NCBI RefSeq assembly: GCF_000143415.4
Contig: NW_003314265.1
Coordinates: 83,231 to 147,230 of the forward strand
Direction: 5' to 3'
From: Selaginella moellendorffii
Lineage: Eukaryota; Plantae; Lycopodiophyta
DNA length: 64,000 nucleotides
Below the pieces are notes generated by a model. It was not told the origin of the DNA, searched no databases, and saw only the letters and a program-made list of their open reading frames with translations. Below are positions 7,000 through 42,130 of the stretch, in pieces. The position numbers and the translations under genes are program-made. Positions within the stretch are counted from its first letter, which is position 1; the number at the start of each line of letters is the position of its first letter.

Positions 7000-7425
7000 A
7001 AAGTATGAGCATGTTGAGCTCTCTGTTAGAAAGTGGAACATTCACAAGCAACCTACGATCATTCAAGAAAAACTTAAGAAACTCATACTGAGCTCAGCCT
7101 TTGTACAAATGAAGATGAAGAAATCACCGGTGACACTGCCACTCACAAAATCGCAAAGCAAAGGAAGGAGCTTCGAGCTGGTAGAGCGATTTAGTGCCGA
7201 GAAACTCCAAGCCCCAGAGGTAGGTGGAGCGTGCATTGCAAGTTGTCGACAGGATCATCGAGCTTAAAAGTCACAGACAGCGTCCTCGGATCCATTTTCC
7301 TCAGCGTCTCGGCTGCTTCAGCATCCACGAGCAAAGTGCGACGTAGAAAAATCAACACTGCCCAAGAGTGCCAAGGAAAATCTCTCCAGTGACAGCTACT
7401 TTGGCTCTGGAAGACGAGACAATTT
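7000..7425 (+). pseudogene. Fragment of the 3' end of the START-like gene
   Basis: ELVERFSAEKLQAPE matches 32560-32600 (+) and the last exon of the gene at 40188-42130 (-). Several small deletions. Confidence 0.85.
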
Positions 7426-7478
7426 AAGAGGAAAATGTTTAAAGTAGGGTTCTTCGGGTGGGCTTTGGCGGGAAGGCG

Positions 7479-7852
7479 ATGGGGAAGCCGGCCCGGAGCT
7501 TCGGTAAGGATCTCTCTCGATGCCGGTAGAATGCGGGTGTGGTCGACAAAGTGGACTCCTTCACGGAAGTTCTAGAGGAGGTGAAGGGCTTGTTTCACCT
7601 TCTAAACTTAACTCCTTTCATGTCCTTCACGTTCTAGATGTATAAGATGCTCAAGCAGAAGGAGGAAGCTGGTGAGGGCGATCGTTGCAAACAACAAGCT
7701 GCTGTTGCTCAACAATCCTGTGCATGACGGGAAAATATCCTTGCATTTCCCAGTTTCAAAGAGCTTGCTCCTTTCCTTACTACATTTCTCTTCACATCCA
7801 ACTTCTCAGGCGCTCTGTGAATGAATTACTGGGAGAACCTTCTAAAGTCTGA
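7479..7852 (+). pseudogene. Internally deleted copy of the At4g18490-like gene
   Basis: Exon 1/intron 1 are joined at GCGGGTGT|GGTCGACAAAG directly to the 3' exons, removing about 2.1 kb including both exon arrays. The AT-AC intron copy is retained (ATATCCTT near 7735). Confidence 0.85.
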
Positions 7853-8825
7853 GGTACTTAGTTTGTTTACTTTCCAACGTCAAACGTAAACGTTTGATCG
7901 CGTTACTTAGTTTAATAAGTTTCGAGAGTTAAGGTCAAGAAGATTATATTTTTGGTATGGTATTGGAAGGACGTGCTATCAAAAATATCAAGCCTGGAAA
8001 AATCTGATTTTCTAGGTGGTTGTCAAGTCTTGTGTATATTTGCATGAATCGCACGCATGTAACTACTGTTTACAACGTGGCAACGTGTTGCCCATGGAAC
8101 AGCTCTTTCAGTAGGAAGGACTAGGGCTTCTTTCTTTCCCACGAAAATTTAAAAAGAACCTCACAAAGACAAAGTGAAAGGAAAAGGAATGTTTAATGTT
8201 ATATCTCTAATAAATGCCAAACCATGTAAATACAAACGAGAGGGCGCGAAATTGGGTCGCCAACCGCAGCGAGCTCCCGCCGCGCGGCGCCGTTCTTGAC
8301 ACCGTGACCGTTGGATTGAGGAATATACGTGGCGGGATGTACGGCGTCTCCCGCTCCCCGGCGTTCGTCCCGAAGAAGAAGAAGAAGAGGGATTCTTCGT
8401 TAGGTTCTATAGAGAAATTTGGAGCTTGTCCGGAAGAACAGTGGAAGAAGTAGAGATCTAGCTCCGGGCAGCTTCTAGGAACCGCAGGAATCGAAGGATG
8501 AGAGTCTCGCGTAGGGCTTGGTCGCAGTAGCGGCATCTGGATCGATAGGAGCAGCCATGAATTCCAGGTGTAGAGTGGGGGATCACGACCGGCGGCGCGA
8601 TAGAGGGCAAGAACGCGAGATTACGGCGAGGAATCGCTTGTAGCAGGCCAGGGATTCGAGGCGAGAGATGCGTTACCAGCTGGGAATGGAGCGCTCCAAG
8701 CTATCACGCTCGGCAAGCCCTCTCCCGAGAATCCAATGGCGATGCTGCCCGGGGGAGGCGGCGCGGGAGGATAGATCAAGCAGAACATCCAGAAGGTTCA
8801 TGCTTGGGGCAGGAGGGCCGCCAGA
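7853..8825 (+). pseudogene. Second duplicated upstream region and truncated 5' end of the ARM-repeat gene
   Basis: Matches 35429-36464 with deletions, and ends at the same GCCGCCAGA junction as copy 1. Confidence 0.9.
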
Positions 8826-32369: not shown

Positions 32370-32812
32370 AAAGTGGAACATTCACAAGCAATTTCAAGAA
32401 TGAAGTTCCACCGGCCTACGATCATTCAAGAAAAATTTAAGAAACTCAAACTGCTTTGGAGCCTTTGTACCATCGCATCAAGGAAGCAAATGAAGATGAA
32501 GAGAATCACCGGTGACACTGCCACTCGCAAATTCGAAGAAGTAAAGGAAGGAGCTTCGAGCTGGTAGAGCGATTTAGTGCCGAGAAACTCCAAGCCCCAG
32601 AGGTCATCCACATCGACTCAGAGGTGGAGCGTGCATTGTAAATTCTCGACAGGATCATCGAGCTCGTGGAGAACTTAAAAGTCACAGACAGCGTCCTCGG
32701 ATCCATTTCCCTCAGCGGTCTCGGCTGCTTCAGCATCCACGAGCAAAGTAGGAAACGGCGAGGTAGAAAAATTGACACTGCCCGAGAGCGCCAGAAAAAC
32801 TCTCTCCAGTGA
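32370..32812 (+). pseudogene. Inverted duplicate fragment of the START-like gene 3' end
   Basis: KQMKMKRITGDTAT...VIHIDSEVERAL matches 40300-40700 (-); frameshifted. Confidence 0.85.
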
Positions 32813-32876
32813 CAAGACAATTTAAGAGGAAAATGTTTAAACTAGGGTTCTCTGGGTGGGCTTTGGCGGGAAGGCG

Positions 32877-35428
32877 ATGGGGAAGGCGGCCGGGAGCTTC
32901 GGTAAGATCTCTCTCGATGCCGGTAGAATGCGGGTGTTTTACTGTGGATTATGGCGCAGGCGATGATCTGGGGGACGATTTCCTCACGTCTTGGAAGCCT
33001 GGGAAGCTCACCGCGGCGCCGGGGCTGGATCTTGACGACTCGCCGCCTCGGCCCATGGCCAAGACCGGGAAGACGTTTGATCTCTCCAAATTGTGAGTGG
33101 ATGGATTCCGATCGTTTCTTGCTTGTGGACGTGATTGATCGCTGCGATGAATCTTGTTGCAGCGATATGGATTTGGACCTTGATGGAGGTTTTAACAAGC
33201 TAGCCTCGTTTAATATCGATCTCGATCTCCCTGGCATTGACGCTACGATGGAGAAGAACGCTGACACTGGATCCAAAACTAAAGAAGTGAGTTCTCGGTT
33301 TAAAGGCCAAGCTCTAAGTTGAGGATACAGTCCATGGAGGTTTCTCCAGTTTGTCGTCCCCCTACTCGAGACAAGCTGCGCGTTGATCTCTCCGACAAGA
33401 ACCCTGACAAAGTGAGTTTTTCTCTTTTTTTTTGTTTAGAGGCTCAAGTTCTTTAGGATACAGTCGATGGATATTTCTCCAGTATCTCGTCCCCCTGCTC
33501 GAGACACTGATCGCTCCGACAACAACGTTGAGACTGGATCCAAAGCTAAAGAAGTGAGTTCTGGTTTAGAGGCAAGCTCTAAGTTCTTGAGGATACAGTC
33601 GATGGAGATTTCTCCAGTATCTCCCCCCCCTGCTCGAGACAAGCTGCGCGTTGATCTCTCCGGCCTGGATTCGATGAATGAGAAGAACGCTGACACTGGA
33701 TCCAAAACCAAAGAAGTGAGTTCTCTCTCTTTTTTTTTGGTTTAGAGGCCAAGCTTTAAGTTCTTGAGGATACAGTCGATGGAGATTTCTCCGGTATCTC
33801 GTTCCCCTGCTCGAGACAAGCTGCGTATCTCCGGCCTGGATTCTGACAAGAACCCTGACACAGGATCCAAAACTAAAGACGTGAGTTCTTTTTTTGTTTT
33901 TGCTTAAAAGACCAAGCTCTAAGTTCTTGAGGTTACAGTCGATGGCTGTTGTTTCTCCAGCATCTCGCCCCCCTGCTCGACACAAGCTACGTGTTGATAT
34001 CTCCGGTCTGGATTCTAGGAATGACAAGAACGCTGACACTGGATCCAAAACTAAAGAAGTGAGTTCTCCTGTTTATTTTGCTTTAGAGGCCAGGCTCTAA
34101 CTTCTTGAAGGATATAGTCGATGGAGAAAGGACCCGTTGTTTCTCCAGTATCTCGTCTCCCTGCTAGAGGCAAGCTACGTGCTGATCTGTCCGGCCTAGG
34201 TTCTAGGTATGACAAGAACGCTGACACTAGATCCAAAACTAAAGAAGTGAGTTCTATGTTTTTTGCTTGAGAGGCCAAGCTCTAAGTTCTTGAGGATACA
34301 GTCTTCTCCAGTATCTCGTACCCCTGCTCGAGACAAGCTGCGTGTTGATCTCTCCGGCCTGGATTCTAGGAATGACAAGAACGCTGACACCGGATCCAAA
34401 ACTAAAGATGTGAGTTGTCTTTTTTTTTTTGCTTGAGGCCAAACTCTAAGTTCTTGAGGATACAGTCTTCTCCAGTATCTCGAACCGCTGCTGGAGACAA
34501 GCTACGTGTTGACCTCTCCGGCCCGGATTCTAGGAATGACAATAACACTGACGCTGGATCCACAAGTAAAGATGTGAGTATGTTTGTTTTGAAGGAGAAA
34601 AGAACGATGTTAATCTCTTTCCATCCTAGGTTCCAGCAGATAAGCTGGACTCCTTTGAGGTAGACCACTCTGATGCTGCAAAGGAGAAGAGCAACGGATC
34701 CAAAGGCAAAGATGTGGTACGATCGGTGGACGAGTATTCTTCATCACCTCCTCCTGCTCGAGAGAACAATCCTGCCATCTATGCCATCAATGTAAGTAGT
34801 CCCTGCCAAGAAGTCTACTTATCTTGGAGAGTTTCCAGGTGCAAGAGATGGAGTGGCGACCGGAGCCTGCTCCCCCGCTGGCCATCGATGTAAGTCGTTC
34901 CTGCAAAGAAGTCTACTTACCTTGGAGATTTTTCCAGGCGCAAGAGATGGGGTGGCGACCGGAGGCTCCCCCCCCGCTGGCCATCGATGTAAGTAGTTCC
35001 TGCTAAGAAGTCTACTTATCTTGGAGAGTTTTCCAGGCGCAAGAGATGGAGTGGCGACCGGAGCCTGCTCCTCCACTGCTGGAGAAGCCTGAAAACGAGG
35101 TGGTCGACAAAGTGGACTGCTACACGGAAGTTCTGGAGGAGGTGAAGGGCTTGTTTCACCTCCTAACGTTAACTCCTTTCATGTCCTTCGCATTCTAGAT
35201 GTGTAAGATGCTCAAGCAGAAGAAGGAGGAAGCCACAGATCTTCTGGTGAGGGCGATCGTTGCAAACAACAAGCTGCTGTTGCTCAACAGTCCCCTGCAC
35301 GACGAGAAAATATCCTTGCATTTCTCAGTTTCAAAGAGCTTGCTTCCTTTCCTTACTACATTTCTCTTCACATCCAGCTTCTCAGGCGCTCTGTGAATGA
35401 ATTACTGGGAGAACCTTCTAAAGTCTGA
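32877..35428 (+). CDS. At4g18490-like uncharacterised plant protein with tandem-exon repeats (about 17 exons)
   Basis: N-terminal [12 protein letters not shown]...[20 protein letters not shown] and C-terminal [44 protein letters not shown] match the family's conserved ends as I recall them. All predicted exons splice in frame. Confidence 0.8.
33287..34573 (+). repeat. Tandem intron+exon array, 8 phase-0 exons
   Basis: Exons 33331-33411, 33464-33553, 33599-33715, 33776-33880, 33939-34058, 34118-34246, 34302-34409 and 34466-34573, each preceded by TAYAG and followed by GTGAGT. Confidence 0.9.
34792..35078 (+). repeat. Second intron+exon array, 3 units of about 98 bp
   Basis: 51-nt exons 34839-34889 and 34938-34988 plus the start of the exon at 35037 (xQEMxWRPExxPPL), with GTAAGT...TTCCAG introns. 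Confidence 0.9.
35310..35371 (+). other. U12-type AT-AC intron
   Basis: 5' site ATATCCTT, branch-like TTCCTTACT, 3' CAC. Splicing gives in-frame HDEK|[18 protein letters not shown]. Confidence 0.8.
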
Positions 35429-36281: not shown

Positions 36282-37589
36282 ATGCGTTACCAGCTGGGAA
36301 TGGAGCGCTCCAAGCTACTCACGCTCGGCAAGCCCTCTCCCGAGAATCCAATGGCGATGCTCCCCGGGGCCGGCGGCGCGGGAGGATCGATCAAGCAGAA
36401 CATCCAGGACATCGTGTGGTCGTTCATGTTTGGGGCAGGAGATGTGAGACTGAGGGCCGCCAGAGAGATTCGCAGGCTCACCAAGACATCGGCCAAGACG
36501 AGGGTCTACCTCGCGGCGGCGGGCGTGATTCCGCCGCTGGTTCTGATGCTCAAGTCCTCCTGCCACGATTCCAGAGAGGCGGCGCTCCTGGCGCTCCTAA
36601 ATCTCGCCGTGGGGAATGAGAGGTATCGTGTTCCTCGCATTGATTTCCTTGTTCTTCGTATCTAGGCTATCTCACGCTCGAATTCTTCCAGGAACAAGGT
36701 GAAGATCGTCAAGTCGGGCGCGGTGGCGCCGCTGGTGGACCTCCTCCAGACCGGCTCCACGCTGCGCGAATCCGCCGCCGCGGCGCTCTACACCCTCTCC
36801 GCCGCGCCGAGCAACAAGCCCGTCATCGGCTCCTCTGGCGCCATCCCGCTGCTGGTGGAGATGCTCACCTCGGGCAGCGTCCAGGGCAAGGTGGACGCGG
36901 TCATGGCGCTCTACAACCTGTCCACGCTCCAGGAGAATCGCCCACCAATCCTGGCCGCGCGCCCGGTGCCGCCGCTCCTCCTCCTCCTCAATAGCTGCAA
37001 AAAATCGGGCAACGTCGCGGACAAGGCCACCTCGCTGCTGGAATCGCTGTCCGCCTTCGAGGACGCGCGGGCATCCATCGGCAAGGTGGAGGGTGGGATC
37101 CTCACGCTGGTGGAGGTGCTCGAGGACGGATCCAGCAAGAGCCGCGAGCACGCCGTGGGGACGCTGCTGGCGCTGTGCCAGAGCGATCGATCCAAGTACC
37201 GCGACGCGATCCTGGACGAGGGGGCCATCCCGGGGCTGCTGGAGCTCACGGTGCAGGGCACGCCGCGAGCGCAGCGGATGGCTCACACGCTGCTGGAGCT
37301 CCTGCGCGAGTCGCCGGCGCGGAGCTCCAGTGCTGGCGGCGGCGGTGGCGGCGGTGGCGGCGGAGGAGGAGCGATCGATGGCATGGAGTGCGAGGTTGGC
37401 GGCGGCGGCGGCGGTGGCGAGGAGGAGGAGGAGATCACCGCGAGGAAGATGCTGTCGGAGATGGTCCAGCTGAGCATGGAGCAGAGCATGAGGCACTTGC
37501 AACAGAGGGCGCTCTTTTGCCGCGCCCCGTCCAGTGTCTCATCGTCGGACGATCCATCCTCGTCTCCACAGCTCTCATCGTCCGACTGA
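36282..37589 (+). CDS. ARM-repeat protein (PUB-type ARM repeats, no U-box seen), 2 exons
   Basis: AAREIRRLTK, ALLNLAVGNE-RNKVKIV, DAVMALYNLS, EGAIPGLLELTVQGT. GT-AG intron about 36623-36691. The start could be 36300. Confidence 0.93.
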
Positions 37590-39303: not shown

Positions 39304-39399
39304 CGCGCCTGCGACCTTCGGTCCCTTTTGCCCTAAACGGATATCAGGGACAATTCAACACAGTAATTGCAACAGGTTGTCTCCATAGAAAATAAAAAA

Positions 39400-40180
39400 C
39401 TCACTTTTTTAGTCTTGGATCGGCCGGAGATATCAACAAGCTTATCTCGAGCAGAGCTATGAGATACTGGAGAATCCTCAAGAACTTAGAGCTTGGCCTC
39501 TCAAGCAAAAAAAAAAGAAATGAGAACTCACTTCTTTAGTTTTGGATCCTGTGTCAGCGCTCTTGTCATTCCTAGAACCTAGGCCGGACAGATCAGCAGG
39601 TAGCTTGCCTCGATACAGGAGAAAAACGGGTCCTCTCTGTGCAAGAACTTAGAGCTTGCAAAGATTAGAGAAAAAAAAGCTCACTTTCTTTAGTTTTGGA
39701 TCCTGTGTCAGCGCTCTTGTCATTCCTAGGCCGGAGAGATCAACATGTAGGTTGTCTCGAGGATACTAGAGGATCCTTTCTGTGCAAGAACTTAGAGCTT
39801 GCAAAGACAAGAGAAAAAAGAGAACTCACTTGTTTAGTTTTGGATCCTGTGTCAGCATTCTTCTCCGTCGCAGCGTCAATACCTCGAGATCGATATTGAA
39901 CGAGGCTAGCTTGTTGAAACCTCCATCAAGGTCCAAATCCATCGCTGCAACAAGACGCATCGCATCGATCAATCACATCCGCAAGCAAGAAACCAATTTG
40001 AAGAGTCTTCCCGGTCTTGGCCATGGGCCGAGGCGGCAAGATCCAGCCCCGTCGCCGCGCTGAGCTTCCCAGCAATCCAAGACCTGAAAAAATCGTCCCC
40101 CAGATCATCGCTTGCGCCATAATCCACAGTAATACCCGCATTCTACTTCCCGCCAAAGCTCACCCGAAGAACCCTAGTTT
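39400..40180 (-). pseudogene. Inverted, truncated and decayed copy of the At4g18490-like 5' end with a few repeat units
   Basis: Reverse complement of 32820 onward ([30 protein letters not shown] units) with deletions. Confidence 0.88.
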
Positions 40181-40187
40181 AAAGATT

Positions 40188-42130
40188 TTAACGGGAAATC
40201 CCATCCCTCCCTTTAAATTTTCCCTTTAAAATATCTTTGAGCAACGCTAGCTTGGATGTCTGTTGTCTCGTTGCTTGGAGAAGTGGCCTTCTTCCAGAGC
40301 CAAAGCAGCTAGTGTCACTGGCGAGATTTTTCTTGGCGTTCTTGGGCAGTGACGATTTCGCTACGTCGCCGTTTTCTAATGCGCTCATCGATGCTGTCGC
40401 CGCTGGCGGAAATGGGTCCGAGGACGTTGTCTGTGACTTCATGTCCTCCACGAGCTCGATGATCTTGTCTAGAACTTGCAATGCACGCTCCACCTCTGAG
40501 TCGATGTGGATGACCTCTTGCCGGTCGGGGGCTTGGAGTTTCTCGGCACGAAATCGCTCTACCAGCTCTTGTGATGTCGAAGCTGCTTCCTTTACTTCTT
40601 CGATTTTGTCAGTGGCAGTGTCAGCGGTGATTCTCTTGGTCTCCATTTGCTTCTTCTCTGATCGTTTCATGCCGTCCTTGATGCGATGGTACAAAGGCTC
40701 CGAAGCCATGAGCTTTTGGAAGACTTTATGCTGGCTTGCAGATAGCACGGCCTGGGAACAAACCGCTGAGTGGTTTAGAAAAGCACAAACTTGTAGGCAA
40801 CGCGTACCTTTTGATAAAGTTTGTAGCCACTGCCAACGAGCTGCCGTGTGATGAAGTTGATCACCCAAGGTGGAACAAAGTCGAGCTTTATATCCATATT
40901 GACCAACGTCCTGCGAAAAACTGAGGTGAAACTGAAAACACGGAGAACGTCGACAAGCTTCAAACTACCTGAAGAAGCTCTGCTCGTTGGTCATCTTTTG
41001 CAGCATAAATCCACCTGAAACTTCCATGCGAACGACATCCTGTGTGGCAGGGGGTAATTCGTCCGCAGAAAATCCATAAATCTCCTCTTCACCTTCGTCT
41101 GGATCTGAAGGAGCCTACACACATGTCGATTTTGCAAACAGCTAAGAGCAGAAACACAGGGACTTCGAGCATACCGTGCCAAAAGTCACAATCACAACGT
41201 CGTCCTCAAAGTACTCCAGCTCAAACTCGGTCATGAGAACCTCCCGTTGCGCCAGAGGCCACGGTACCTTGACTCTGGAGAACTTAGTTAACACTGAAAC
41301 CACAACGCAGCCGCATACCTTATATGACACAGATCCTCGCCGACGCGAATTCTCTTCACCCATTTGGATTCCACAACTTTGAACGTCGGCATGTTAAACT
41401 GCGGCCACCTGTTTAGACGTCAACGAGGAACTCGCAGAAACAAAGCTCCAACATACCATGTATAAAACGCTGGAGCTTCCCAAGCCACACAGATAGCTGC
41501 GACAAAGAAAAAAAAATCCCAAAAGGCCAAAGCTTGAGAAAACCATCTGAGAAATTTTTTTTTCCTACCATTCATCATGGGTCCATTCACAATGCCTTCA
41601 ACACAGTAAGTGTGGAATGGCATGCCTTCTGGGCCTGGCCGATACATAACACGCATAACATCCGTTTCCTCCTTGATCTGACAAAACCACCAAAATAAAT
41701 TCTCCTTTCGATCAGAGCGAAGATGTGATTACACTACCTTCCATGAGAATGGCGTGTCTTCGTTGTCTAGGAGCTCCTGGCGAGCGCTTCTCAGCGCATC
41801 CAAAAACGTAGAAATCTCCGTCGCTCGCTTCTCGGCGACCTTGTCGATCGTCTCCTGGGACCAGGCATGGTAGTGCTTGTCTGGAAGAAATTATCGAAGA
41901 TTTCAGCCACAAACACCTGATCGACAGTGCAATCCTCTACAGGAAGCCTACATTTGACCTAGAAAATCTGCGAATGCGCGATGGATCAATCATCTTGGAT
42001 GCTTACCCAGTGCCGGGCTCGCGCTTAGCTGATCCCGCACGATCTGGACGATTCCAGCTCGCTGCGAGAGGGCTGGCGACATGAGCGACGAATCCAGGCG
42101 CGCGCGACCTCGCTCCTTGGCAGCCGCCAT
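40188..42130 (-). CDS. START/polyketide-cyclase-like lipid-binding domain protein, multi-exon
   Basis: RLDSSLMSP...VRDQL, RVMYRPGPEGMPFHTYCVEG, VKVPWPLAQRE, FRRTLVNMDIKLDFVPPWVINFITRQLVGSG. Confidence 0.85.

Follow-up and report, generated by a model that had tools for sequence, protein, structure and literature searches.

A tandem array of intron–exon cassettes in a spikemoss homologue of the synaptonemal-complex gene SCEP3

Here we describe a tandem array of intron–exon cassettes in a gene of the spikemoss Selaginella moellendorffii. The gene lies in a window of 64,000 nucleotides (nt), positions 83,231 to 147,230 of the forward strand of contig NW_003314265.1 (assembly GCF_000143415.4), and all coordinates given below are those of the window. 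Judged from its sequence, it is the S. moellendorffii homologue of Arabidopsis SCEP3 (At4g18490), which was identified in 2025 as a protein of the central element of the synaptonemal complex (PMC12283363). The array itself is real, and it represents a known way of lengthening a disordered protein segment. Taking the evidence together, we consider it probable that in this SCEP3 homologue a unit made of an intron and an exon was amplified, and that the resulting array has been kept spliceable and in frame.

The cassette array

The array comprises eight tandem units, each made of an intron followed by an exon, at positions 33287-34573 (+). Delimiting these units from the sequence with a script, we obtained exactly the anatomy set out in a preliminary description of this DNA, and reproduced the exon lengths of 81-129 nt, the intron lengths of 44-60 nt and the stop-free, phase 0-0 reading that had been reported there. 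The units (U1 to U8) are as follows.

33287-33411 (+): cassette U1, intron 33287-33330 (44 nt) and exon 33331-33411 (81 nt)
33412-33553 (+): cassette U2, intron 33412-33463 (52 nt) and exon 33464-33553 (90 nt)
33554-33715 (+): cassette U3, intron 33554-33598 (45 nt) and exon 33599-33715 (117 nt)
33716-33880 (+): cassette U4, intron 33716-33775 (60 nt) and exon 33776-33880 (105 nt)
33881-34058 (+): cassette U5, intron 33881-33938 (58 nt) and exon 33939-34058 (120 nt)
34059-34246 (+): cassette U6, intron 34059-34117 (59 nt, ending in ATAG) and exon 34118-34246 (129 nt)
34247-34409 (+): cassette U7, intron 34247-34301 (55 nt) and exon 34302-34409 (108 nt)
34410-34573 (+): cassette U8, intron 34410-34465 (56 nt) and exon 34466-34573 (108 nt)

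The cassette introns all begin with GTGAGT (8/8), and end in ACAG in seven cases and in ATAG in the eighth. Each of the eight exons is a multiple of three in length and contains no stop when read in the frame carried over from the upstream exon; every one of them, and the array as a whole, is phase 0-0. Tandem Repeats Finder reported periods of ~163 and ~351 nt across the array (scores 879-1057), and alignment of the units with MAFFT gave a mean column identity of 78%, bearing out the earlier proposal that whole intron–exon units were duplicated in tandem. The eight whole units thus stand where they had been placed, but the array begins earlier, at ~33223, inside the preceding exon. In particular, the last ~64 nt of exon 33163-33286 constitute a half unit (alignment score 72, against 14 ± 2 for shuffled sequences), and a hidden Markov model (HMM) of the unit also matches the corresponding stretch of P0119, a RefSeq model of a sister locus on another scaffold. 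The array therefore amounts to ~8.5 units. It codes for ~286 residues, half of a protein of ~558 residues, in the form of repeats of ~39 residues each that are rich in Ser, Asp, Arg, Lys and Pro.

We propose that the array began as one very short U2-type intron and one exon, a unit of ~125-190 base pairs (bp) that would have been amplified to ~8.5 tandem copies, likely by unequal recombination or replication slippage. Because the introns are so short, the genomic period (~163 bp) is of minisatellite size. Each new exon would be flanked by copies of one phase-0 intron and each duplicate would be frame-neutral at birth; since both flanks copy the same intron, symmetry and a length divisible by three would come free, and selection would afterwards only have to maintain them. 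Removal of the eight small introns from the transcript would then leave an mRNA in which the repeat residues lengthen the disordered region of the protein.

The PEVK exons of titin, which offer the closest likeness to be drawn here, are flanked by long introns and spliced by exon definition. Titin is a vertebrate gene, whereas the spikemoss array has introns of 44-60 nt and resides in a plant. In both, short, frame-symmetric exons were copied in tandem along with the introns beside them, and both arrays encode a disordered repeat whose length varies between lineages; in the case of PEVK, differential splicing that tunes a mechanical spring has been documented (PMC6469411), whereas the spikemoss array is described here from genomic sequence. 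More generally, symmetry of exon phase has been linked with intrinsic disorder as a statistic of the human genome (PMC3632108); a symmetric, disorder-coding exon can be copied repeatedly while frame and fold are left undisturbed. The array described here is a single concrete case in a plant, its symmetry being enforced by the very intron that was duplicated.

Identity of the gene

A public gene model, P0118 (SELMODRAFT_405447), is encoded exactly in the window, with 615 of its 616 residues lying under exact 8-mers. With exon 35199-35393 as the query and a cut-off of E<=1e-3, phmmer returned 116 matches, which fall at the extreme C-terminus in full-length proteins (550-950 amino acids); many others are short fragments. 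Half of the named matches that we looked up carry the source name 'uncharacterized protein At4g18490' (these come from Nelumbo, Mercurialis, Pistacia, Chenopodium and Zingiber), and the matches also include three S. moellendorffii models. Comparison by BLASTP with the Nelumbo member of the family detected an N-terminal block (E=1e-11, 41% identity over 64 residues) as well as a C-terminal block (E=3e-10, 47% identity over 77 residues), and the two blocks are colinear with their counterparts in that protein. The preliminary description had spoken of a conserved uncharacterised protein, a label that is now outdated given that the Arabidopsis homologue, At4g18490, is SCEP3 (PMC12283363). Indeed, a homologue from S. 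moellendorffii is listed in the paper that describes SCEP3 (PMC12283363). Outside the array, the gene consists of the following features.

32877-32901 (+): exon 1, start codon, encoding MGKAAGSF plus 1 nt, as in the N-terminus of P0119 and of P0001 (another S. moellendorffii model)
32902-32959 (+): intron 1, 58 nt, GTAAGA..GCAG, needed for the N-terminus of P0119 and P0001
32960-33092 (+): exon 2, in which the conserved N-terminal domain begins (BLASTP against the Nelumbo At4g18490 protein, E=1e-11)
33163-33286 (+): exon 3, remainder of the N-terminal Phe/acidic motif, ending in the half repeat unit
34574-34629 (+): intron after U8, 56 nt
34630-34791 (+): unique exon, 162 nt
34792-35141 (+): second cassette array, period 99 nt, three units
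35142-35198 (+): intron, 57 nt, GTGAAG..CTAG
35199-35309 (+): helix exon, encoding the core of the conserved helix at the C-terminus (in Arabidopsis SCEP3, the domain that binds ZYP1), from phmmer and AlphaFold2 (AF2)
35310-35371 (+): predicted U12-type AT-AC intron, 62 nt, donor ATATCCTT, 3' end CAC
35372-35428 (+): last exon, ending in the stop codon and fitting the I-x-x-[VILM]-[QRK] pattern of 22 family models

The model as revised has 17 exons and ~558 codons, 286 of them from the eight cassette exons. Translated exon by exon, with the phase carried forward, it stays open all the way from start to stop, and canonical signals are present in all 16 introns.

Arabidopsis SCEP3, with 803 residues encoded by 16 exons, has a conserved N-terminus rich in Phe and, at its C-terminus, a ZYP1-binding helix of ~70 residues; apart from that helix the protein is disordered (PMC12283363). 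All three of the features by which the family can be recognized at the level of sequence, namely the N-terminal motif, the disordered middle and the C-terminal helix, are found in the spikemoss protein. First, the Phe-rich, acidic motif DFLxSWK ... FxFxKxDMDxxLDGxFxKLxSF is present, and its F, S, W, F, K and F columns are invariant in an alignment of 40 rows. Second, AF2 run on P0119 with this 40-row alignment predicted a single confident helix, at residues 473-518 (predicted local distance difference test (pLDDT) values of 78-97). Third, for residues 95-384 of P0119 the prediction is without secondary structure at pLDDT below 55 (39-54 in the repeats), and the composition of the repeat segment falls below the Uversky boundary, in agreement with disorder. 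The repeats are thus predicted to lengthen the disordered stretch that separates the N-terminal Phe/acidic motif from the C-terminal helix, much as the disordered linker of the preliminary description. That description had also pointed to Ser-Pro sites, and the segment does hold 10 of the 13 Ser/Thr-Pro sites of P0119. (Note that a Pfam search with six exon peptides found no family and that a search of the ESM Atlas with the helix exon gave no usable match.)

Arabidopsis and spikemoss SCEP3 share the same order of parts: the Phe/acidic motif comes first, a long disordered stretch follows, and an alpha-helix of ~45-70 residues stands at the extreme C-terminus. The spikemoss protein is the shorter of the two (~558 against 803 residues), and half of it is an 8.5-copy repeat for which no match was found among the 128 fetched proteins from outside Selaginella, almost all of which are family members that the helix exon had picked up. 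The Arabidopsis protein localises to the central region of the synaptonemal complex, binds ZYP1 and is needed for synapsis, whereas the spikemoss protein is known here from sequence. Among all 133 fetched proteins the unit HMM matched those of Selaginella only, and a comparison of the unit profile with the family alignment gave as its best match the conserved KMDMPDLDF motif, over only 9 columns and at a probability of 0.7%.

In 13 of the 43 full-length non-Selaginella representatives of SCEP3, the disordered middle contains separate internal repeats, spaced, for example, at ~39 residues in Pistacia, ~24 in Lithospermum and ~46 in Heliosperma. These angiosperm repeats occupy the same disordered middle, but their sequences are unrelated to the spikemoss unit, and they are known here from proteins, whereas the spikemoss unit is known from DNA as an intron–exon cassette. 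The repeats of P0083, P0022, P0090, P0054 and P0007 (Pistacia, Lithospermum, Heliosperma, Chenopodium and Mercurialis) are unrelated to one another as well. In Chenopodium SCEP3, a duplicated block of 212 residues includes the N-terminal Phe motif.

Constraint on frame and splicing

Parsimony on the alignment of the units implies at least eight indel events in the cassette exons (3, 6, 6, 9, 9, 9, 18 and 18 nt), all of them multiples of three, compared with cassette intron lengths that, modulo three, are 2, 1, 0, 0, 1, 2, 1 and 2 (Fisher p=0.007). Splice sites are intact at all 16 positions (eight six-base donors and eight AG acceptors) in units whose exons are 7.7% off the unit consensus. The RefSeq model P0119 has exactly the exon boundaries of the preliminary description, and includes all eight units. 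In addition to the gene itself, the window contains two degraded copies of it.

39380-40160 (-): decayed inverted partial copy, with equivalents of exons 2-3 and ~three cassettes (blastn, 72-81% identity)
7122-7924 (+): gutted remnant copy, running from the upstream region and the first part of the gene straight into the last exons (blastn, 82% and 91% identity)

The inverted copy serves as a neutral control internal to the window. It is without a start codon, its exon-2 donor is deleted and a frameshift lies in its exon-3 equivalent. Among its units, one measures 95 nt and one is without an acceptor; the frameshift and both of these defects fall within ~400 nt. The remnant at 7122-7924 has lost the equivalent of 32937-35100 and has a 14-nt deletion in the helix exon. 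(The blastn copies in the window are confined to these two gene remnants, and we discarded the idea of a transposon or dispersed satellite.) Because the indels are multiples of three, the splice sites are intact and the decayed copy is broken, we consider that selection for keeping the array in frame and spliceable, that is, selection on its length and composition, is supported by the sequence; the argument that the preliminary description drew from a frame kept despite indels is sustained on the same three grounds. Constraint on the residue sequence of the repeats is weak. This pattern accords with a disordered segment whose length, composition and open frame are important and whose precise sequence is of little consequence.

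Further evidence comes from the sister loci, which we compared using protein models. The units of this locus pair one-to-one with those of P0119, with identities on the diagonal of 0.77-1.00, and each unit keeps its own idiosyncratic indels across loci; in the inverted copy, the older and decayed one, two units are closest to U6 and U7. It follows from the one-to-one pairing and from these U6 and U7 matches that the array is older than these duplications, and that no homogenisation of its units has taken place after them. Comparison of copy number had been suggested as a check in the preliminary description, and unit counts do differ between the protein models: P0001 has one extra U7-like unit, and P0119 has two 99-nt units compared with three at this locus. 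The length of U1 also differs, by 9 nt, between loci. As a side observation, cassette intron 3 (33554-33598, 45 nt) is stop-free in frame and, if retained, would add 15 residues without harm, whereas keeping any one of the remaining seven would disrupt the frame or introduce a stop. The Joint Genome Institute (JGI) models P0118 and P0001 keep cassette intron 3 as coding sequence.

Several points weigh against an array maintained in a working SCEP3 gene. The pooled ratio of nonsynonymous to synonymous differences (pN/pS) of the repeats is 0.80; among units, intron identity (86%) equals exon identity (86%); and freedom from stops is not significant alone (P=0.17 under neutral substitution). Of the protein models used for the comparisons between loci, two contain visible errors. 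The assembly has at least three copies that look intact, and the window copy could be redundant. Finally, that the cassette introns are actually spliced, and that the gene is expressed at meiosis, we infer from the sequence. (A word-based protein search with the 93-residue read-through open reading frame (ORF) found no short RNA-derived fragments, and a literature query with the locus tag found no match.)

The first three of these points are also what would speak for the array being a minisatellite within one long intron, with exon 33163-33286 spliced straight to 34630 and the open frame a recent coding leftover; indeed, that direct junction would be in frame, as both of its sides are phase 0. 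Such a leftover would nonetheless have had to accumulate at least eight independent in-frame indels (a probability of ~1.5e-4 when a neutral indel has a one-in-three chance of preserving the frame) and to keep 16 splice sites intact, whereas the truly neutral copy in the window decayed fast. Moreover, the units arose before this locus and the sister loci separated, and at the sister loci they remain intact. We therefore regard a minisatellite within an intron as most improbable.

The redundancy noted above can be put more strongly: the window copy may be a redundant paralogue or allele that is drifting towards a pseudogene, with P0119 or P0001 supplying functional SCEP3. The three intact-looking loci and the two remnants, which mark the region as prone to duplication, and the weak constraint on the repeats accord with such drift. 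Against it, the frame is open from start to stop, all 16 introns have canonical signals and the exon peptides of the window copy are 95% identical to P0119. We consider drift of this kind rather unlikely; it is compatible with the anatomy that we describe, and touches present function only.

A different use of the array was put forward in the preliminary description, namely that the eight symmetric exons are included combinatorially, and that regulated splicing thereby tunes the length of the linker and the number of its Ser-Pro sites. Any subset of the exons could be dropped without a frameshift, given that the exons and the array are phase 0-0, and the near-identical splice sites could pair across units; differential splicing of the tandem exon arrays of titin PEVK provides a precedent (PMC6469411). 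However, consensus GTGAGT donors and introns of 44-60 nt are conditions linked to efficient recognition across the intron. Exon skipping goes with weak sites, and skipped exons in plants are without a bias towards multiples of three (PMC6142364), while in S. moellendorffii itself intron retention is the main mode of alternative splicing, at 42% of events (PMC5310277). The P0119 model includes 8/8 units, and RefSeq isoforms of the angiosperm homologues differ at their ends and not in their repeats. With introns this small, consensus sites and a plant host, combinatorial skipping appears unlikely a priori, and we hold regulated tuning of the linker to be quite improbable here; all units are probably included in transcripts as a rule. 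(A mutually exclusive exon cluster was set aside, because the units are not of equal length and every one of them is present in the gene models.) Our preferred reading thus remains that of an amplified array held in frame and spliceable.

The rest of the gene, and what the array may mean

Comparison with the family also bears on both ends of the gene. The start codon is most likely ATG 32877, followed by the 58-nt intron 32902-32959, as in P0119 and P0001; a start at ATG 32917 was replaced after comparison with family models, as was a C-terminal tail read through to 35396. Long antisense ORFs notwithstanding, a gene on the minus strand was rejected, the plus strand being fixed by homology to the family.

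At the 3' end of the gene, the donor ATATCCTT lies directly after ...LHDEK, and a branch-site-like TCCTTAC is found at 35350-35356, 16 nt before the 3' end of the intron. Removal of 35310-35371 produces a tail that fits the spliced C-terminus of the family, and the sequence makes a U12-type AT-AC intron the most likely reading of this segment. The peptide 'IS[FL]...', which is the translation of ATATCCTT, is read as protein in all three public Selaginella models and in 48 of 79 family models. Because this translation recurs in so many models, the AT-AC intron looks conserved across land plants and often missed in annotation.

Downstream of U8, the intron 34574-34629 showed no detectable kinship with the cassette introns (alignment score 17, inside the range of shuffles). 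The unique exon 34630-34791 contains motif-level echoes of the repeat unit, without an intron between them, and its similarity to the units at the DNA level was not above that of shuffles. It is followed by the second array, in which each exon (34839-34889 and 34938-34988, 51 nt each, and 35037-35141, 105 nt) is preceded by a GTAAGT..CCAG intron of 47-48 nt (three introns in all). Tandem Repeats Finder gave a period of 99, 2.9 copies and 90% matches for this array, and its column identity is 93%; it is younger than the main array of eight units.

Beyond the gene, the window contains an inverted segmental duplication, 39380-40640 (-) / 32373-32820 (+), by which the 3' end of a START-domain gene moved together with SCEP3. 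In the minus-strand duplicate the SCEP3 part is decayed, and the JGI model P0121 joins this decayed part to START-domain coding sequence upstream; in the plus-strand duplicate SCEP3 looks intact and the START gene is reduced to a 3' fragment. The START-domain gene and SCEP3 are wrongly fused in each of the JGI models P0121 and P0118. Neighbouring genes, seen as ORFs, are one for an ARM-repeat protein with a Gly/Glu-rich tail at 36282-37589 (+) and a small one, starting MVLWELTLATAYFLGLKRTYR, at ~39330-38400 (-). Scans of the window for tRNAs and Rfam families were empty.

Our analysis corrects the public models of this gene with respect to its start, its eight cassette exons and the missed last intron, probably of U12 type. 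It also illustrates how a very short intron lets a whole exon–intron unit behave like a minisatellite, and how a protein can in this way gain hundreds of disordered residues without its frame ever being broken. Proteins of the synaptonemal complex are noted for fast sequence change. Conceivably, though we give the idea little credence at present, the cassettes make the disordered arm of SCEP3 adjustable, through copy number between haplotypes or species or through occasional skipping of exons, and the length of the arm would alter the assembly of the synaptonemal complex or the control of crossovers. If this were true, the independent repeat expansions in angiosperm SCEP3 would represent the same adaptive lever, used repeatedly. 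The spikemoss copies, which differ by whole units, and the angiosperm repeats would together constitute natural length variants with which the disordered arm of SCEP3 may be probed.

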